DNA of 64,000 nucleotides, from the sequence record LC819005.1; one strand, written 5' to 3'. Shown here piece after piece: positions 2,578-60,154 of the stretch (within the stretch, counting starts at the first letter, position 1; every line of letters begins with the position of its first letter). The position numbers and the translations under genes were made by a program. The notes beneath the pieces are model-generated. The model saw only the letters and a list, made by a program, of their open reading frames with translations, ran no database searches and had not been told where the DNA came from.

Positions 2578-3034
2578 TCGGTAATCGTTTCGGCAGCAGT
2601 AGTTGCCACCGGTCCTTGAGATAAACTAGAAGTGCCCGAAGCTTGGCCTGGAATCGGCCGTGTCGGAAGCGCTTCCGGATGTAGTGCGGGTGAACACGCA
2701 CGCTCTCCAGATTCATCCACCGAAGAATGTCAACGAGATCGTCCTGAGGATCTTCCGAACCACCGTTGGTGAATTTGATACGCAGACCGTACAGCAAATC
2801 ATCGCCCGCACATGAATAACGGATCTGTAGCCGCGCCTCGTTCGTCTGAGTGTCGTATTCGACGAGCGCTACGTGGATAAAGTCCTTGTCCACTGGGTAG
2901 ATGTAGAAGTAGTCTTTGTTGACGTCGTACTGTTGGAACTCCTTGCGTAAGTGATGGAGTACAACCGGATGGCTGATCCGGAAGAAGCCTTTCTCGCGTA
3001 GAATCGCGCGAACCTTTTCAATCGTGAGAGACAT
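2570..3034 (-). CDS. Hypothetical protein (154 aa)
   Basis: Protein-like ORF co-oriented with neighbours, downstream of a TATG motif. Confidence 0.75.
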   Translation of the reverse strand: MSLTIEKVRAILREKGFFRISHPVVLHHLRKEFQQYDVNKDYFYIYPVDKDFIHVALVEYDTQTNEARLQIRYSCAGDDLLYGLRIKFTNGGSEDPQDDLVDILRWMNLESVRVHPHYIRKRFRHGRFQAKLRALLVYLKDRWQLLLPKRLPNE

Positions 3035-3055
3035 GGGTTAGTCCTTTATTAACGG

Positions 3056-3430
3056 CGGCATAAACCAGAGACAAACCCCGATGCACGCGAGGTCTATCCC
3101 TGGTTCAGAGGCTCCACAAGTACCACTCAACAATCGTTGTCGATAAATCTGTCATGCGCCCGCTTCGGAGAGTGCGAGACTCCGCGCTGGCTTTACATGG
3201 ATCTACCTAATCCCACACGGGACTTTTCCCTACGTGCTTCACCGCTCGTAGAGGTCAGCAGAGTATCTGAACGATCGTTAGTCCTAGGCTCCACCACAGA
3301 GCCGCTCGCTGCTATCTAAAGGAAGAAAACTTCACAGCGGGATCGAGGATGACCAGTTCCTCGGTCTTTGCATCAAATAGTATCTCGCCGTAAAAAATAA
3401 CCACGAGATACTATCCTTGCTCATTGCTAC
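3056..3430 (-). ncRNA. Candidate structured non-coding RNA (~370 nt), family unassigned
   Basis: No credible minus-strand ORF; many nested stems by eye; promoter-like CACATTAC at 3435-3442 and a terminal hairpin at 3064-3104. Confidence 0.4.
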
Positions 3431-38553: not shown

Positions 38554-39327
38554 TTACCAGCCAGTCCAGACGGCCTTCGAACGCGCCTTAGCGACCGAGG
38601 GCAATTGCCAGCCGAGCGAGTCCATCAGCTCGTGGACGTTGAGCTGCACGCTCTCGTTGCCCACGCCTGCGGTTTCGATCAGCGTACGCGTACCCGCTTC
38701 GACCTGACCGCGGGTAAAGGACACGTCTTCCAGACCTTCGAGTGCCGGGCTGTTGTACTTCTCAGCCACCGACATGCCCGGTTCGTTCACATAGTCAAAC
38801 GTGACGATGGTCTTGATGTACCGGTTGATCACGCCGTTGACCATCTTGTCATCGGTGAACGAGCGGATCGAGAAGCAGACGTTTTCGGCCGGATTCTGCA
38901 ACTGCTTTTCCAGCACATAGCCCAGCGGGCCATTCGGCGCCACTTCGGCAATGATCGCTACGATCGGGCGGCCTTGGTCGTCCTTGTAGTTATCGAAGTC
39001 GAGCGACACCGAAGCAAAGTGGCAGCACACCTTGTCTTCGTGAATCTGCAGCAGTCGAGCGTAGTAAGCCTGCATCGACATGTTGGCGTCACGGCGGGGA
39101 TGCCCGTATTCGCCACGAAGCGCGCCACGCTTGACGCGGCGCATGAACGAGCTGGATTCCTCGAAGAATTCCCGAGCTGCGTCCGCACGGTAATACATCC
39201 CGGCGCTGTTGAACATGTTCAACGCCCCGATGACCATCACGTAGTAGCCGCGCTCGTTCTTCTTCAGTTCTCCCACCTTGTTCGTCCCGTTGAGCCGGGT
39301 ACAGGTGAAGGAAACGTTGTTGAGCAT
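38554..39327 (-). CDS. Prohead protease (phiKZ gp175-like)
   Basis: Catalytic His in GEYGHP, Ser in FSIRS, Asp in TFDYVNEPG; C-terminal self-cleavage-like PALE. Confidence 0.9.
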   Translation of the reverse strand: MLNNVSFTCTRLNGTNKVGELKKNERGYYVMVIGALNMFNSAGMYYRADAAREFFEESSSFMRRVKRGALRGEYGHPRRDANMSMQAYYARLLQIHEDKVCCHFASVSLDFDNYKDDQGRPIVAIIAEVAPNGPLGYVLEKQLQNPAENVCFSIRSFTDDKMVNGVINRYIKTIVTFDYVNEPGMSVAEKYNSPALEGLEDVSFTRGQVEAGTRTLIETAGVGNESVQLNVHELMDSLGWQLPSVAKARSKAVWTGW

Positions 39328-41840: not shown

Positions 41841-44800
41841 TTATGCCTTGCCTTCGCGGTAAGCCTTGATCACCCGTTTCGCTGCCACCATCAGCAGCGT
41901 CGTGGTAGTTCCGATGATGTACGGCGAGGTCACAATACGAGCAGCAAGTGAGTTAGCCCCGAAGACCGCGTCGATCTCGACACCGGACTCCGTACGGATG
42001 TTATCGTTAAACACCCGGCCGAACACGGTCTTCAGCTGGTTGCCGAAGACGCCCTTGTCACCCACACCAGCCGACACTCGTGTGCTGATGTACACCCGGA
42101 TACATGCGGTATCCATCAACAACGGGTCGGTGCCGATGCGGAACTCATCCGACACCTGGCCCGTGTAGGCCCGACGTCCGATTGCCACATTGCGCCCAGC
42201 GATCCGCTTGTCCGACCATTGAGCCAGTCCTCGCAGACTGTTCGACATGTCTTCCAGATCGCCGTTGTAGTAGACCTCGATGCGCTCGATCTTGCCCTTG
42301 ACCTTGGCCTGGGGCGTCTGGGCCTGCAGCACGCGCAGGGTGTCCAGCGTTTCCTCGTCCAGGAAGTGATTCCGGGCTGATTGCGCATCTTCAATGATGC
42401 ATAACATACTTTCGGGCTCTACCGCGTCGTGCTCCTTGACCATGCGGTGAATCTCCTGGTCAAAGTTCACCACGATGTCCTTGATCTTCACCTGTTCAGA
42501 GATGAGTTTCTTGGTCAGTCGGGTGGAGATAGCAGACGAGTCTTCCAGCGTGTCAGGCGACTCCATCAGCACCACCTTAGCAAGCGTGGCGGACTTCCAG
42601 ATGATCTGCTTCGGGTTGAGCATGTCGCGCTCGAAGAAGCCGGTGTTGTAAGCGATCGGCTCACCCACTGCAAACACCTGCCCCTCGACCAGGTCCGTCT
42701 TGATGGTGTGCGGAATCGTGAGACCTGCAGCGTTGCCGTAGCGACGACCGAGAATCACACCCTTCTGCTCACCGTCATCGAACTGCACCACGATACCGTC
42801 GGGTTTCACCGACAGCACCTTACCGGGCTTCTTGGCCGTGACCGCAAACATGTCACCCACGCGGTGCGGGATCACTTGTTCATAGCCCGTACGCACCATC
42901 GCTTGGCGGTAACCTTCACAGGACACCACGTGACGATTTTGAATGCCGATAAAGTTCACCCGCTTTGGATCGTCCTTGGTCGAGCCTGGCGACACCAGGG
43001 CCGAGGTCGACAGCAACGAAGTCGGACCGTGCGCTGCCGCATCATACGGACGCGACGTGCCACGCAGCGAATCAAACTGCGGGTTGGCCGAAGTAAAGAC
43101 GTTGATGGCCACGTCCGAGGAGTCCACCGTCGACTCCGAGATCACCCCCATGTCGTTGCGGTGATAGATCCGGGTAGACTTCACCATCGAGCGGGAGTTA
43201 CGACCACCCGTACCCGAATACGTGACTGCCTCGTTTTCCTTCAAGTTCTGGATCGGGTTGATTTCCGAGACCTGATCTTTGGCCGGATCTTGCTGAATCG
43301 CAATCCATACCGCGTACGGATTCACTTCCAGCCCGTAACGATGCTTGCCCGGTCGACCGCTGTGCACCCGTGCCGACTTGACCAGCTCCGCGTACACCGC
43401 ACCCGAGAACCGCTCGTAGCCCTTGATCCGCATATACCGCGTATCCTGGCTGTCCGGGTGTTGGTCGTCCGTGAGCATTTCCGAGGCACGAATCAACAGC
43501 TTCGTGAACACGGTCGGCTCTTTCATCTCGATCAGCAGATCGCGGGTGATCGGGTCGACGAACATCTGCTCCAGCAAGTCGAGCTCGCGCAGATACTTGA
43601 CACCCAGCTTCTTCTCTTCGAACAGATTGAAGTAGACATCTTTCTTGCTGAACTCCTCGGTCGGGAACCGCGAAGTCGTCTCGTAGAAGTCACGCCAGCC
43701 ACCGAGCACCATCGTCGCCAGCTTGTCCTTCCGGGAGAACACGTACGTGCGGTCGTCGAAGTTGATCGACCACTCATCTTCCACCAGATTCGCCCGCTTA
43801 CCCACCGGCAGCACGCGCATCGAGGTCGGCTGCACCAGTTGCAGCACAGCATCCCAACCCAGCAGATAACCCAGCACCACACCCACCGGAATCATCTTGC
43901 CGAAGACTTTCAGCTCCGCAAACTCCAGCGGGGCCTTGCGGCTGTCCAGACCCAGGATCGATTCGATCGACGGTGCAGGCCGCATGCCAGCTTCGTCGTG
44001 GATGTACAGGTTCTCGTCGAACCCAGCCAACAGCTCGCCTTTGCCTTCCACGGCGCGACCCATCACGATAAACCCAGGGCTCATCCGCAGACCGAGAATA
44101 GTCGCCATGTCGAAGTGGCACTTGTACGGCTTGCCCTCGACCATCAGCGTGAATTCACGAAAGCCCATGGCAATCGCCGAGATCAAACGCGGTGTCTTGC
44201 GACCCTTGTCGAATCCCGAGCCCGGCACCATGTTCGTGACCGTCTGATCACTGACGCTCAAACCGCGCGACATGATTGCCTGACGAATCCACTTACCCCA
44301 GTCATTCACCCGACGCTGGCTACGCTCAGCAAACACCTTGCCGTAGTAGCTGGTCAGTGCAACCTGATCCGGTGCGATCTTGCGGATGGGCATGTCGCCA
44401 CGTTGCATCCGCATGCGGTAGTTCACCCCGTTGATCTTGAAGTTACCTTCATCGTCAACCTTCGGGATCTTCATCTTGATCGTCGACGGTGCACCTTCGA
44501 TCGGTTTCAGCTGCACCGTGTACTCGTGGTGCGTACCGGTGATGTCTTCCACTTCTTCGACATCGAAGTTGTTGATCATCACCCCCGCCGACTGCAGCGA
44601 GGAGACCATCGAGGAGATGTCGCGCTGCATGATCTCGCGCGAATAGCGCTCGTTCCAGTTCAGGAGCGTCGACTGCAGCATCGTCTTGTCGATGATCGTC
44701 GGCTGATCCGGAATGGCCGGAGGCGTCTCGATCTTGAGCTTCTCGGGCGGGACCTTGACAAAGTCCTTCATCGTGCCTTCGTGACCCAGCGGTGCAGGCA

Positions 44801-46241
44801 ACGAATTGAAACGCTCACTCGCTTCCAGCAAACGCCGATACTCAGCCGCGGTAATGGCACCCGAGTCAGCCGCTTTGGCCAGTTGATGCTGGAACGCTTC
44901 CTGGTGATCGACCGGGAAGAACTTCGGTTGCTTAGCCGGTGCCGCGGGACCACCTGCTGTAGCCACACCGTCATCCGATACAGCCAGCTCAGGCGTTTCC
45001 GCATGGGCATCTTCCGTCTCGTCGTCATCCGCATCCGGAGGCGGCGGTGCGTCGTCTTCCGACACCGAGGTGATTTCCAGCGCTTCGAGGTCCTTGTCGA
45101 TTTCCGCCATGAAGTTGGCGTGATCGGTTTCGGCATCGTACCCGGCGTAAGCTTGTGCCTCCGTCACTTCGTCATCGTTGGTCGACGACTTGGTGTTGGG
45201 CGAGCCACTGGCTGCGTCCATGCCTTCGGTCTCGGTCGGGTCCACAGCGTCCGGCGTTTCCGGCTGGCCCTTGTCCGGACCTTCCGGCAGATCATCAGTC
45301 ACCGGCTTGCCTTCCTCGTCACCGAGGTTCTCCGGCATATCGACGCTACGGACTTCGGTGACAGCCATCAGCATACGCAGGAACATTTTCTGCATCACCG
45401 ACGGGTCCCACGAACCCTTCTTGAGCGGCTCGATCTCGGGATTCTCCTGCTTCGCTTCTTCGTGCGCCCGGATCGTCGCCTGGTCAGGCTTGCGCCATTC
45501 TTCCAGCAACGCGAGATCCACCACACAGAAGCGATCCGCTTCACGCAGAATCAGCTTGACGTTCGAGACGTCCGGGATGTACTTGTGGATCAGCGACTTC
45601 TCGGCGCGATGCTCGCCCAGCCAGGTCCACAGGTGATGCAAGAGGATCAACTCGTACGAATTGAAGATCCCCATGTTCTTCGTGGTCCAGCCCTGCACCG
45701 AACGATCCAGCACGGTCCGAGCGGGCAACTGTTGTGGCAGCTGCAGCTCGATGTACTGGTGATAACCCGTGTGCACATTCTGGCCAATCGACTGGAACAA
45801 CGTCGCGAAGATGTTGTACCAGCGGTTGTGGAACGTGAACAGGTTGCGCTGGTACTTATAGCGCCCCAGCAGCAGCCCGTAGTTGTGCGTGACGATCACG
45901 CGGTTATCGCGCTTCATCGCCTCGATATCAATCGAAGCCCGGAAACGCGGATGGGCGGTGCGGAACTGACGGATCTTGGTGTTGATATCCCCCGGGATAG
46001 GCCGGGGGTTGCCCTTCATCTCCACCAGCGTCGTGTGATGCGTGATCCGCAACGGCTTGGTATTCTTCTGGTAAAACAGCATGTCTTCGCTCGGCCACGG
46101 GTTGGTGACCGACGGCGAGACATAGTGCACCATCGCCATGGCCGGCAGTTCAAACCGCGTCACCAAGGGCAGAGGTGGCGAAGTGAACTGGCCGGTACGG
46201 CGCAGCACAAAGTTGCGAAAGAAAAACTGGTATTGAATCAT
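41841..46241 (-). CDS. Virion RNA polymerase beta subunit, N-terminal part (phiKZ gp178-like)
   Basis: 1466 aa; beta motifs KDDPKRVNFIGIQNRH, EDSSAIS, VGDKGVFGNQLK; acidic linker at about aa 300-420. Confidence 0.92.
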   Translation of the reverse strand: MIQYQFFFRNFVLRRTGQFTSPPLPLVTRFELPAMAMVHYVSPSVTNPWPSEDMLFYQKNTKPLRITHHTTLVEMKGNPRPIPGDINTKIRQFRTAHPRFRASIDIEAMKRDNRVIVTHNYGLLLGRYKYQRNLFTFHNRWYNIFATLFQSIGQNVHTGYHQYIELQLPQQLPARTVLDRSVQGWTTKNMGIFNSYELILLHHLWTWLGEHRAEKSLIHKYIPDVSNVKLILREADRFCVVDLALLEEWRKPDQATIRAHEEAKQENPEIEPLKKGSWDPSVMQKMFLRMLMAVTEVRSVDMPENLGDEEGKPVTDDLPEGPDKGQPETPDAVDPTETEGMDAASGSPNTKSSTNDDEVTEAQAYAGYDAETDHANFMAEIDKDLEALEITSVSEDDAPPPPDADDDETEDAHAETPELAVSDDGVATAGGPAAPAKQPKFFPVDHQEAFQHQLAKAADSGAITAAEYRRLLEASERFNSLPAPLGHEGTMKDFVKVPPEKLKIETPPAIPDQPTIIDKTMLQSTLLNWNERYSREIMQRDISSMVSSLQSAGVMINNFDVEEVEDITGTHHEYTVQLKPIEGAPSTIKMKIPKVDDEGNFKINGVNYRMRMQRGDMPIRKIAPDQVALTSYYGKVFAERSQRRVNDWGKWIRQAIMSRGLSVSDQTVTNMVPGSGFDKGRKTPRLISAIAMGFREFTLMVEGKPYKCHFDMATILGLRMSPGFIVMGRAVEGKGELLAGFDENLYIHDEAGMRPAPSIESILGLDSRKAPLEFAELKVFGKMIPVGVVLGYLLGWDAVLQLVQPTSMRVLPVGKRANLVEDEWSINFDDRTYVFSRKDKLATMVLGGWRDFYETTSRFPTEEFSKKDVYFNLFEEKKLGVKYLRELDLLEQMFVDPITRDLLIEMKEPTVFTKLLIRASEMLTDDQHPDSQDTRYMRIKGYERFSGAVYAELVKSARVHSGRPGKHRYGLEVNPYAVWIAIQQDPAKDQVSEINPIQNLKENEAVTYSGTGGRNSRSMVKSTRIYHRNDMGVISESTVDSSDVAINVFTSANPQFDSLRGTSRPYDAAAHGPTSLLSTSALVSPGSTKDDPKRVNFIGIQNRHVVSCEGYRQAMVRTGYEQVIPHRVGDMFAVTAKKPGKVLSVKPDGIVVQFDDGEQKGVILGRRYGNAAGLTIPHTIKTDLVEGQVFAVGEPIAYNTGFFERDMLNPKQIIWKSATLAKVVLMESPDTLEDSSAISTRLTKKLISEQVKIKDIVVNFDQEIHRMVKEHDAVEPESMLCIIEDAQSARNHFLDEETLDTLRVLQAQTPQAKVKGKIERIEVYYNGDLEDMSNSLRGLAQWSDKRIAGRNVAIGRRAYTGQVSDEFRIGTDPLLMDTACIRVYISTRVSAGVGDKGVFGNQLKTVFGRVFNDNIRTESGVEIDAVFGANSLAARIVTSPYIIGTTTTLLMVAAKRVIKAYREGKA

Positions 46242-46243
46242 GG

Positions 46244-48268
46244 TTAATCCACTCGTGCGATGTCAAGCATGCTGTGGTCAATGAACTTGACCATCACTTC
46301 CTTTTCACCGCTATCGTAAAGTTTGCGCAAACGATGGTTGCCGTCGAGAATGTAGATCTTCCCCTTCTCGCGAATACCGATCAGCGGCACACTCGGGTCA
46401 GCCTTTTCCAGTCGGTCCTTGTCGAGGTCCTCGTCACCCTTGACGTTCCACGCCACATCCTTCATCTTGACACTCACCGCTTCGATGTTCTCAGCGATGT
46501 CGAAAATGTCGTTGATGTAGTAGTGCACGCCCCAATGGGTGAACGTGTCGGACTTGTGCTCCTGATAGACTTCGACAGCCGCGCCCGTGTCTTCCAGCGC
46601 TGAGGTAAGCGACCACTCTTCCATCGCGGGCTGCTTCACCACGACGGGCTCACCCGTGAGGTTCCAGAGCACCAACTCGACGGTAGCCACTGCACAGCTA
46701 TAGAGCAGCTCACCGTTGGAGCCGATATACGCCTTGCGGGTCTTGAAGAACGCTTCGGCTTCTGCGATCGCTTCGTCCGAGTAGGCGATGTTCGCCGAGG
46801 AGGTGTCACCGTCGAAGTCAGCCGTCAGGCGCTGCAGGTGGCTGGAGTGCGGAATCAGCGAATTCACAAACGCCGAGTCCTGGCGCGGGAACTCATACGC
46901 CACGTACGCGTCACCCGCATCAATCCAGGCATCATCCAGCATGCGCCGCTCGTCGTGCGCCACCGTCACCCGCAGGTGCGTCTTGCTCGGATAGATCGAA
47001 CCGATCCCCGCCACCGGATAGCGCGTCAGGAAGAGCGGGTATTTACCGAAGTGGCGATACACGGACAAATAAAAGAGATCCGTCAGCGTGAGCGGGCGAA
47101 CATGCTCGCGACTGCGCGTCGGCGGCAACTGCGTGATGTCGTTGAAGACCTTGAACGTGCCATCCGGTCCCAGATACAGCAGGCCCAGATAGTAACCGTC
47201 GATCAAGAGCGGCTGGTTGCGGATGTCTTCTTCGCGGAACGAGGCGATGATCTTCTCGATCCCCTCCTGCGTCGCCCACTTGTCATAGTAGCGCACATGC
47301 AGGAAGACGTCGCGAGGACGCCAGGTCTTCGGGTCCACCAAAATAGCGGCCGAGTTGACATCCGGGAACATCTTCGAGAGGAAGTCGCGCACCTGGGCAG
47401 CGGACACCGGCAAAGTCGCCTGGAGATATTGGTATAGACCCAGGATGGTACTATTGAAGTCGGGGGTGCCTTTTTTGCCCAGCACCGTCACGGCCGTGTT
47501 CATAGCCGTGATGACGTTCCGCGTACCATTGAAGATCCGACGCGAGGCAACCTTGCCGAGGAAGAGCTTCTTCTTGCCCTTGATCAGCGCCTCGATCATG
47601 TCGTAGAGCGCGACAAAGTTCAGCTGCATATCGAAACGCGGCTTGTCGATCACTTCGGCGTTCGTGCCGAGGCTCGATTCGACGATCACGTTCGAGAGCG
47701 CAATGAACTTGCGATACAGCGTGTTGATCTCGTCCTCGCTCTTGCGGTTGAGTTCGTCGATCTCGATATCGCGCAGACCCGCAGGCATCACCACGACATA
47801 GCGGGTGAGCGCGGTTTCCTTGTGGGCTTCCACGAGCTTGATGTACTCGGCCCGGATGTTGGAGGTGCCCTGCTCGTAGTTGATCTCTTTCCAGTGTTCG
47901 AGGAAAAAGGCGTAACCGGTACGGGCTCCGTCCGAGGGCTTACCCTTGACGAAGTCTTTTTGGCTGTCGTCCCACAGCGCCCAGGCTTTACCAGCCATGA
48001 TGTCGCCATAGAAGCGCTTGAGCTTCGTGATCGCCATGAAAATGAGCGGGTGGAAGATCGGTGCCTTGATGTCGATATAACCAAACAGCAGGCTACGACG
48101 TTCATCACCCACCCGACCGAAGATGTCTGTGGAGAACAGACCTTCGGGGTGGAAGTTGGTGGTCGCGCCGTCGAAGATATCGAGCGCTTTGACCTGTTTG
48201 ACGCTTTTCAGTTTTTCCGGTGTGAGATTCAGCAGCCCAATGTTAAAGGGCACAGACATTTTTTGCAT
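46244..48268 (-). CDS. Virion RNA polymerase beta-prime catalytic subunit (phiKZ gp180-like) with a C-terminal ParB/Srx-like extension
   Basis: Catalytic ADFDGD at 46805-46819; RRIFNGTRNVI; extension containing YILDGNHR at 46331-46345. Confidence 0.9.
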   Translation of the reverse strand: MQKMSVPFNIGLLNLTPEKLKSVKQVKALDIFDGATTNFHPEGLFSTDIFGRVGDERRSLLFGYIDIKAPIFHPLIFMAITKLKRFYGDIMAGKAWALWDDSQKDFVKGKPSDGARTGYAFFLEHWKEINYEQGTSNIRAEYIKLVEAHKETALTRYVVVMPAGLRDIEIDELNRKSEDEINTLYRKFIALSNVIVESSLGTNAEVIDKPRFDMQLNFVALYDMIEALIKGKKKLFLGKVASRRIFNGTRNVITAMNTAVTVLGKKGTPDFNSTILGLYQYLQATLPVSAAQVRDFLSKMFPDVNSAAILVDPKTWRPRDVFLHVRYYDKWATQEGIEKIIASFREEDIRNQPLLIDGYYLGLLYLGPDGTFKVFNDITQLPPTRSREHVRPLTLTDLFYLSVYRHFGKYPLFLTRYPVAGIGSIYPSKTHLRVTVAHDERRMLDDAWIDAGDAYVAYEFPRQDSAFVNSLIPHSSHLQRLTADFDGDTSSANIAYSDEAIAEAEAFFKTRKAYIGSNGELLYSCAVATVELVLWNLTGEPVVVKQPAMEEWSLTSALEDTGAAVEVYQEHKSDTFTHWGVHYYINDIFDIAENIEAVSVKMKDVAWNVKGDEDLDKDRLEKADPSVPLIGIREKGKIYILDGNHRLRKLYDSGEKEVMVKFIDHSMLDIARVD

Positions 48269-59578: not shown

Positions 59579-60154
59579 TTATTTCTTCAGGTAACGTTTC
59601 TCGGCATCCAACCACACCGAAGGCACCACGCCTTCCTTGAGTGCAGTACGAATGTCTTCGAACCCTTGGATAAGCCAGCCGGCGTCCTTGGGTGTTACAT
59701 GGAGACTGTTGGGGCCGAACGTGTAGTAATGATCAAACGGCAGTTCGGACTCGGTAATCAACTCCAGAATCCGCTCATGCTGAATGATCTTTTGGTAGTT
59801 CGCAGCGACGATGTCCTGTTTGAACTCCTCATACCACTTGTACCCCATCGTACGTCCCACTTGTTTCGCCCGAAAGCCGCTCAGATAACGCAGTCGGTCT
59901 TCGGTGAAGCCCGAGCGCGCCCAATACCATAAACCTTCCATAGAATAGAAAGGTCCGAAGTACGGATGCGTAAAGGGCGAGTGGGCAAAGTGAGACAGCA
60001 ACCGCCCTAGCTCGGTGCGGCCCATCGAATGGATGTTGATGTGATCCACCCCATCCTTATCAACGGAAAAGCCGGCCTCGCTCTTGATGCCTTGATGGTA
60101 CTTCGACTTTGCGTCTTTACGGTTCATGATGGTAAGTCTCTGAGTATGCGTCAT
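59579..60154 (-). CDS. NADAR-like (T4 gp30.3-like) protein
   Basis: GRLLSHFAHSPF...FYSMEGLWYW...LSGFRAKQVG parallels gp30.3 LSNFA.PF...EG...GLSG.AA..G; ATGA-coupled start. Confidence 0.55.
   Translation of the reverse strand: MTHTQRLTIMNRKDAKSKYHQGIKSEAGFSVDKDGVDHINIHSMGRTELGRLLSHFAHSPFTHPYFGPFYSMEGLWYWARSGFTEDRLRYLSGFRAKQVGRTMGYKWYEEFKQDIVAANYQKIIQHERILELITESELPFDHYYTFGPNSLHVTPKDAGWLIQGFEDIRTALKEGVVPSVWLDAEKRYLKK

Follow-up and report, generated by a model that had tools for sequence, protein, structure and literature searches.

A ParB/sulfiredoxin-like domain fused to a virion RNA polymerase subunit in Ralstonia phage FLC1-1B

The fused gene gp43 and its two modules

FLC1-1B is a giant phage (a 290-kb jumbo phage) whose host, Ralstonia, is a plant pathogen. 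The window analysed here, a stretch of 64,000 nucleotides, comprises bases 1-64000 of its genome (LC819005.1), with identical coordinates. Within this window, the gene gp43 encodes the N-terminal subunit of a virion RNA polymerase (RNAP) beta-prime chain, continued by a domain of the ParB/sulfiredoxin (Srx) type. Both lie in a single open reading frame (ORF) on the minus strand, which runs from position 48268 to the stop codon at 46244-46246 and specifies 674 amino acids plus the stop; the coding sequence in GenBank begins three codons later, at 48259. The features of the locus are collected in Table 1.

The first module is a complete polymerase subunit. Residues 1-538 match positions 1-538 of the 539 positions of PHROG 2986, the family of RNAP beta-prime N-terminal subunits (E 1.5e-205), and the residues D484, D486, G487 and D488 of the catalytic loop are invariant in 75 homologues. 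A sequence-only search of the PDB with the beta-prime core gave no match. The full-length AlphaFold2 (AF2) model of gp43, with a mean predicted local distance difference test score (pLDDT) of 82, was matched by Foldseek to a chain of the AR9 non-virion RNAP and to bacterial, cyanobacterial and plastid beta-prime/RpoC1 subunits (E 1e-12 to 1e-14). In its full-length core, its D-F-D-G-D loop and its synteny with a gp178-type beta subunit and the head protease, gp43 resembles the phiKZ gp180/SPN3US gp240-type subunit, but it carries an extra 133-residue C-terminal linker and domain, which are absent from phiKZ-like phages, RSF1/RSL2, FLC9 and most other homologues. The original prediction, made from the letters of the window, had claimed that the frame continues past the usual end of gp180-like proteins. 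The usual C-terminus that it assumed was correct, because homologues without the fusion stop 0-8 residues past the same N-[LM]-T-G position, and the in-frame continuation stands as well: PHROG 2986 is followed by PHROG 17560 in FLC1-1B, as it is in FLC4-3B, RP12 and RP31. The extension is thus an addition to a complete beta-prime N-terminal subunit. The RP31 orthologue, ORF39, has been identified in purified virions using liquid chromatography-tandem mass spectrometry (PMC5468394, Table S3).

The second module was assigned to the ParB/Srx superfamily by profile, model and structure comparison. Residues 566-665 of gp43 match positions 4-106 of the 119 positions of PHROG 17560, with E values of 1e-14 to 7.5e-16. 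When modelled by AF2 on the family alignment, residues ~574-674 have pLDDT values above 94, and the ~40 residues before them are of low confidence and without secondary structure. All of the 50 best Foldseek matches of the domain in the PDB belong to the ParB/Srx superfamily (E 2e-3 to 0.14, probability 0.66-1.00); they comprise ParB, Noc, KorB, PadC, sulfiredoxin, SbnI, SerK, 1vk1 and Atu1540. The matches in the viral structure library BFVD are the RP31 orthologue and phage proteins named ParB/Sulfiredoxin. At the sequence level, a profile of the PHROG 17560-type family matches SbnI (E 5e-7), with the D-G-N-H-R loop aligned to the D-G-V-H-R of SbnI. The fold and the D-G-x-H-R motif that had been proposed for the extension are both borne out by these results. 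For the comparison with the PDB the family profile was needed, since phmmer with the extension alone returned designed coiled coils and armadillo repeats, which we judged spurious.

An exhaustive profile-free search of the representative library with a 141-residue query retrieved 392 relatives of the extension at E<=0.001, most of them free-standing proteins of 105-150 residues, whereas a word-indexed protein search with the same query yielded no more than 2. When 83 members are aligned (81 free-standing homologues, the window domain and one fragment of a fused gene), one proline and the D, G, H and R of D-G-x-H-R are invariant. The window domain has D642, G643, H645 and R646, and these columns align to the same loop of SbnI. 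The D-G-x-H-R pocket of the domain probably binds a nucleoside triphosphate (NTP). Several large proteins of 650-2580 residues (P0007, P0009, P0010, P0025, P0029 and others) match only query residues ~97-125, 5-10 times each, and have no D-G-x-H-R; these repeated short matches probably reflect an unrelated repeat that resembles the strand-loop-helix around the motif.

The narrower families of the superfamily do not accommodate the domain. It shares with the N-terminal domain of ParB CTPases (ParB, Noc, KorB and PadC) the fold and the position of the phosphate-binding loop, and the top Foldseek matches (7bm8, 7bnk, 7nfu, 8qa8 and 6ryk) are of this kind; however, it matches no helix-turn-helix (HTH) family, and the protein ends 28 residues past the loop without a dimerisation domain. 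A canonical ParB CTP-dependent clamp is excluded on both counts. Sulfiredoxin is excluded by the lack of the catalytic cysteine, as residues 542-674 contain no cysteine at all. The free serine kinases SbnI and SerK, which depend on ATP or ADP, provide the best sequence-profile match and share the D-G-x-H-R loop, and they superpose with the lowest root-mean-square deviation among the Foldseek matches listed (about 2.9-3.1 A over ~80 residues). These enzymes nevertheless have ~240-250 residues with a second, C-terminal domain, and because gp43 ends so soon after the motif, its kinase architecture is incomplete. NCBIfam gave nothing for the window domain, and its SbnI/SerK models, whose cut-offs are 350-380 bits, reach 12-22 bits with members of the family; with neither the second domain nor the family cut-off, an SbnI/SerK kinase is excluded. 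The Pfam family ParBc_2 (PF08857, putative ParB-like nuclease), the only Pfam model of the ParB/Srx type with any match, scores 20.5 bits for the window domain, below its gathering threshold of 23.6, and is matched at E<0.01 by only 2 of the 84 members of a second alignment, A2 (the 83 plus the RP12 domain). Lying outside the ParB, Srx, SbnI/SerK and ParBc_2 families, the domain is, as modelled, a distinct family within the ParB/sulfiredoxin superfamily, and one that is unnamed in the Pfam, PHROG and NCBIfam libraries searched.

Table 1. Features of the gp43 locus in the window
Feature	Coordinates	Strand	Basis
gp43, fused virion-RNAP beta-prime N-terminal subunit and ParB/Srx-like domain	46244..48268	-	ORF translation, GenBank BFM93323.1, PHROG 2986 and PHROG 17560
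RNAP beta-prime N-terminal core, residues 1-541	46646..48268	-	PHROG 2986, AF2 and Foldseek
A-D-F-D-G-D catalytic metal-binding motif, residues 483-488	46805..46822	-	translation, 75 homologues
Inter-domain linker, residues 542-566, predicted disordered	46571..46645	-	pLDDT <50 over 539-567
[A/G]-x-E site A548-M549-E550, candidate prohead-protease cleavage site	46619..46627	-	alignment of 31 fusions
ParB/sulfiredoxin-fold domain, PHROG 17560, residues 567-674 (108 residues)	46247..46570	-	profile, AF2, Foldseek
D-G-N-H-R motif, residues 642-646, phosphate-binding loop of the fold	46331..46345	-	aligned with D-G-V-H-R of SbnI
gp42, virion-RNAP beta subunit, phiKZ gp178 type	41841..46241	-	PHROG 3148 (E 0), annotation, synteny in RP12, RP31, FLC9 and RSF1
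gp38, phiKZ-type head maturation protease	38554..39327	-	PHROG 3014 (E 6e-94, full length)

Distribution of the fusion and other carriers of the domain

The fusion is rare among sequenced phages. A homologue of the subunit is present in 325 phage records, and of these only FLC1-1B, FLC4-3B, RP12 (two records) and RP31 have the extension; it is not universal in this family, an outcome that the original prediction had named as a possible refutation. The fusion is commoner in metagenomic protein clusters, counted as 90%-identity representatives among the best 120 matches: 30 of these homologues bear the domain, with 654-718 residues and 46-89% identity to gp43, and 78 have the usual length. The domain itself has homologues in 41 phage records, none of them of the phiKZ group, and RSL2 and RSF1 contain no detectable homologue.

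Between FLC1-1B and RP12 or RP31, identity amounts to 87% in the core and 63-64% in the domain; the linker is 50% identical among orthologues and varies in length between them. As judged from these identities, the domain evolves faster than the core. In some homologues with a core identity of 83-87%, a short tail takes the place of the domain, and one unfused homologue ends right after the linker, with the beta gene directly next; the 6.7-kb locus around this gene contains no copy of the domain. Given this patchy presence, the faster evolution and the degenerate loops of some copies (see below), the sequences indicate that the domain is accessory, dispensable for the polymerase and outside the polymerase machinery proper. 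Composition does not back a recent horizontal acquisition, since the GC content at third codon positions (GC3) of the domain, 0.74, is similar to that of the host gene, 0.78. A conserved internal translation start at Met549 is unlikely and was rejected, because this residue is I, V, L or N in the orthologues.

The same domain has been attached to other proteins. In P0028 it is inserted internally in a beta-prime C-terminal subunit of the gp80 type, in P0104 it stands at the N-terminus of a complete gp80-type subunit, and in P0105 it is inserted in the middle of a gp178-type beta subunit. Gene 126 of Xanthomonas phage Xoo-sp14 (L012, 190-3324) encodes 1044 residues, of which the first 927 belong to PHROG 3004, annotated as portal in OBP and Proteus phage 7, and the domain is C-terminal. 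This portal-family protein has a long glutamate-rich tail before the domain, in which D-G-M-K-R replaces the D-G-x-H-R of the loop; ejection of a portal would not be expected. In phages other than the phiKZ-related (chimallivirus) ones, the partners of the domain are different: it is attached to a Phage_portal_3 portal together with a pyrophosphatase (InPase) domain in P0115, to a MuF head protein in P0052, and to ART-PolyVal domains of polyvalent proteins and LigD-type 3'-phosphoesterase domains. The free-standing members include EL ORF075 and P0002, the latter 59% identical and beginning at the domain boundary. In PA5oct gp140 (249 amino acids) the domain is C-terminal with no other recognised domain, and the record marks detection of this protein in virions by mass spectrometry. 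In most cases, the identified carriers are head-interior proteins, and because the domain is attached to various such proteins in related phages, it looks, from sequence, like a new injected cargo module.

Several of these loci deserve separate mention. A free-standing copy of 150 residues, 59% identical to the window domain, lies at 2930-3382 of the Logan contig SRR10769897 (L016), and the DnaB-type helicase of this contig is closest to that of Bacillus phage AgentSmith, which suggests transfer of the domain between distant giant phages. In the Logan contig DRR438482 (L010, 2258-9359, 25% GC), from the uncultured phage whose beta subunit has the domain inserted, the beta-prime N-terminal gene is interrupted once; the insertion includes an ORF with weak or faint matches to HNH_3 and NUMOD1, of the homing-endonuclease type, and the downstream piece of the interrupted beta-prime gene was not found in this contig. 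In FLC1-1B itself (L009, 257447-259411), the gp80-type beta-prime C-terminal gene gp279 is followed on the opposite strand by gp280, a 'putative RNA ligase', which may be a neighbour of interest given the LigD-type 3'-phosphoesterase fusions of the family. Finally, in at least one PA5oct-like record a 249-residue ParB-like protein is labelled 'RNA polymerase beta prime subunit'; the family match in PP408249.1 (Pseudomonas phage vB_Pa-PAC2) lies at 59709-60032, and the label was probably carried over from an RP12-type fusion via the shared domain.

The linker and its candidate protease site

In the full-length model, residues 539-567 have pLDDT values below 50, and the core and the domain are not docked (predicted template modelling score, pTM, 0.46). 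The original prediction had placed two sites for a phiKZ-type prohead protease in this region, A-M-E and A-L-E. Across 31 fusions, the column of A548-M549-E550 holds [A/G]-x-E in 25 and glutamate in 27, with the middle residue free. In the other two candidate columns the motif is not positionally conserved: it occurs in 9 of the 31 at A557-L-E559, so that A-L-E is not supported as a second site, and in 6 at A564-V-E566. At least one [S/A/G]-x-E is present in the linkers of 28 of the 31 fusions, compared with 12.2 expected from composition-preserving shuffles, although the fused sequences are related and the shuffle test thus overstates their independence; control tripeptide patterns occur in only 0-6 of the 31. 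The variable middle residue and the near absence of the control motifs are a stronger argument than the shuffle test. The pattern of the A548-M-E550 column is, in sequence, as expected of a protease recognition site. A-M-E therefore survives as a candidate by virtue of the disordered linker and the conserved column, whereas its use is called into question by the full-length size of the RP31 orthologue, which is considered below.

A suitable enzyme is encoded nearby. The presence of a phiKZ-type protease, which had been presumed, is confirmed by gp38, three genes downstream of gp43; it is annotated only as a 'putative virion structural protein', and on the strength of its full-length PHROG 3014 match we correct this annotation to head protease. 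The SPN3US protease has been reported to cut after A-x-E (PMC10052503), and a site of the S-x-E type is cited for the phiKZ protease (PMC5694885). The start codon of gp42, the beta subunit gene, lies three bases past the last base of the gp43 stop codon, with two bases between them. The genes for the protease, the head proteins, the beta subunit and the beta-prime N-terminal subunit form a conserved block like that of phiKZ, and the order of a very large divergently transcribed virion protein, gp43 and the gp178-type beta subunit is the same in RP12, RP31, FLC9 and RSF1.

Compared with known substrates of phiKZ-type prohead proteases (those of phiKZ gp175 and SPN3US gp245, and the propeptide of the 201phi2-1 virion RNAP beta subunit), gp43 shares the [A/G]-x-E site, a segment predicted to be disordered and a presumed location in the head interior. 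The known cuts remove N-terminal propeptides, however, whereas a cut in gp43 would free a folded C-terminal domain.

Interpretation and alternative explanations

The reading that we favour, and that we consider about as probable as all others taken together, is that gp43 is a natural fusion in which a ParB/Srx passenger of PHROG 17560 uses the virion RNAP as its vehicle into the head, perhaps to be released there by the protease. In SPN3US, none of the five polymerase subunits enters the prohead until they have assembled with one another (PMC5694885). Because of this assembly before entry, any subunit would be an equally good vehicle, which would explain the use of three of them; a domain on any one would be packaged with the complex and would reach the cell later, when the DNA is ejected. 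The gp38-type protease would cut the [A/G]-x-E site of the linker in at least part of the molecules, and the cut would yield a beta-prime N-terminal subunit of normal length and a free ParB/Srx protein of ~14 kDa, about the size of the free-standing homologues. The module would bind NTP in its D-G-x-H-R pocket, and its early target in the infection would not be RNA synthesis itself, as has been proposed for ParB-type polyvalent domains. The head interior would then be where the domain is needed, and probably also the infected cell when the DNA enters. The fusion, its fold and distribution, the conserved site, the protease gene and the virion location of the RP31 orthologue are shown by the data, and cleavage, nucleotide binding and any activity of the domain are steps that we infer.

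Several findings weigh against this reading. The RP31 orthologue ORF39 was observed at 74 kDa, with a theoretical mass of 75.2 kDa, 26 unique peptides and 41% coverage (PMC5468394, Table S3). As a complete cut at the conserved site would give ~62 and 14.5 kDa by computation, at least a substantial part of this protein is full length in virions. Of 14 protease sites mapped in SPN3US, 13 serve to remove N-terminal propeptides, and the nine substrates of the protease include no virion RNAP subunit (PMC10052503). The internal insertions of P0028 and P0105 have no flanking [S/A/G]-x-E, and in those phages the domain must therefore stay attached. Over the whole of gp43, the count of [S/A/G]-x-E is 10, against 7.9 +/- 2.5 by chance, so that the argument from the motif depends on the linker. 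Among the 30 fused copies, 8 have a degenerate D-G-x-H-R loop, and hence nucleotide binding is not always kept. Finally, the three polymerase fusion partners are subunits of one enzyme, which equally fits a role with the polymerase.

The force of the RP31 masses is limited by other entries of the same table. The major capsid protein (76.8 kDa in theory, 75 kDa observed) and the portal homologue ORF85 (102.7 and 100 kDa) also appear there at unprocessed sizes (PMC5468394, Table S3), and both proteins are cut by the head protease in phiKZ, 201phi2-1 and SPN3US (PMC5694885). Either the RP31 group of phages differs or the observed masses of Table S3 are unreliable on processing; because these sizes run contrary to all analysed relatives, the table is weak evidence on this point. 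The virion polymerase beta subunit of 201phi2-1 is processed (PMC5694885), and in phiKZ the fragments of processed head proteins stay in the capsid (PMC11297242). Release of the ParB/Srx domain by the protease is plausible, and we see substantial cleavage of gp43 in FLC1-1B as having about an even chance. Of the polyprotein-cargo strategy put forward by the original prediction, the ParB/Srx fusion and the presence of the RP31 orthologue in virions thus hold, whereas release by the protease is unproven and is opposed by the RP31 masses; the activities that it suggested for the freed domain (DNA loading, nucleotide signalling or counter-defence) are conjectural.

A possible but clearly less probable explanation is that the domain is a permanent accessory of the RNAP that works in cis. 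It might serve as a sensor or switch for NTP, or tether the injected polymerase and so help it to start on phage DNA without host factors. Three subunits of one enzyme have gained the domain independently, twice as internal insertions from which a protease could not release it, and the full-length ORF39 in RP31 virions (PMC5468394) is in line with such a permanent attachment. Moreover, RP12 and RP31, which have the domain, replicate in rifampicin, and RSL2 and RSF1, with the same RNAP set and no homologue, do not; the authors of the RP12/RP31 study proposed an unknown RP12/RP31-specific factor for growth in rifampicin (PMC5468394). The link between the domain and independence of rifampicin is weakened, however, because the phiKZ group is missing among the phage records with a homologue, yet phiKZ replication has been reported to be rifampicin-resistant. 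A function in cis also sits poorly with the domain's occurrence on portals, MuF and polyvalent proteins and as free-standing copies, with the close homologues that lack it, with the degenerate motif of some fusions, and with a disordered linker across which AF2 predicts no docking, and it would leave the conserved [A/G]-x-E site unexplained.

A bolder form of the cargo reading, which we regard as doubtful, would take the members of PHROG 17560 as an unrecognised family of injected NTP-dependent factors of early infection in giant phages, which are loaded as polyproteins with any available prohead protein (polymerase subunits, portal or MuF) and freed by the protease. They could be either the 'missing factor' of the RP12/FLC1-1B group or phosphotransfer enzymes of the SbnI/SerK type. 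In the former case, the domain would free early transcription in this group from its need for the host polymerase; the latter, with phosphotransfer on nucleic-acid ends, rests on the LigD-type 3'-phosphoesterase fusions.

It is quite unlikely that the domain serves mainly in packaging, as a propeptide or a handle for head targeting or assembly that is cut off or loses its relevance once the prohead has matured, without any role in the host cell. Every identified carrier in chimallivirus phages is a protein incorporated into the prohead, the linker conserves a protease-type site, and in a quarter of the fusions the domain is kept although its active-site motif has decayed, all of which such a role would accommodate. 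Unfused polymerases are nevertheless packaged normally in most relatives, the invariant D, G, H and R of the 83-member alignment argue for ligand binding, and the known propeptides of such phages are N-terminal.

More improbable still is a selfish or decaying insertion, that is, a ParB-like nuclease-type mobile module in virion genes that is neutral or being lost. The patchy presence among close relatives, the several insertion points, the degenerate motifs of some copies and the homing-endonuclease ORF adjoining one such locus would fit this history. The domain is, however, kept in frame across 46-89% protein identity, most copies have the residues that are invariant in the family, its GC3 resembles that of the gene in which it lies, gp43 shows no hallmarks of an intein or intron around it, and domain proteins without an RNAP or portal partner exist, one of which, PA5oct gp140, is a virion component. 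An artefact of assembly or annotation, in which a sequencing error joined two adjacent genes, is of negligible probability, as the frame is continuous in four independently sequenced isolates and 30 metagenomic clusters (JGI, ENA and Logan) with differing linker lengths; the frameshift that the original prediction had named as a possible refutation is refuted by these independent sequences.

The passenger reading has a precedent in the polyvalent proteins (Iyer et al. 2017, PMC5512222), in which a ParB/Srx-superfamily domain is likewise fused to a protein that enters the head and is delivered together with the DNA. The polyvalent set includes the ParB domains of the DdrB-like type in phage P1 as well as the single-subunit N4-type virion RNAPs with their several domains (PMC5512222), and members of the present family co-occur with ART-PolyVal, InPase, MuF and portal domains. 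gp43 differs in that its carrier is a subunit of a multisubunit RNAP and its domain belongs to a different ParB/Srx family. Of the several unrelated effector-type domains that mark a polyvalent protein, gp43 has two modules, one of them a polymerase subunit. A 2025 survey of ParB-CTPase fusions used PF02195 and did not mention RNA polymerase (PMC12704722); the PF02195 model does not detect the family of the gp43 domain. In the literature searched, we found no paper combining ParB, virion RNAP and jumbo phages: ParB goes unmentioned in the RP12/RP31 paper (PMC5468394) and is also absent from the FLC1-1B paper, where RNA polymerase occurs in the reference list only. The principle of fusing an effector-like domain to a delivered protein is known; what is new is the domain family, the multisubunit virion polymerase as its carrier and the conserved protease-type junction.

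With these observations, multisubunit virion RNA polymerases join the proteins in which the ParB/sulfiredoxin fold occurs. Little is known about how phiKZ-like phages select and package the dozens of proteins that they inject, and cargo attached by fusion would provide a testable example: a small, structurally defined domain that is repeatedly attached to different head-interior carriers and, in one class of fusions, accompanied by a conserved protease-type site.

A minor feature of the locus concerns the opposite strand. A 1272-codon ORF runs antisense to the beta subunit gene at 42429-46247 (+), and many other genes of this window, which has a GC content of 56%, are likewise overlain by long antisense ORFs; we take these to be artefacts of composition and not genes.

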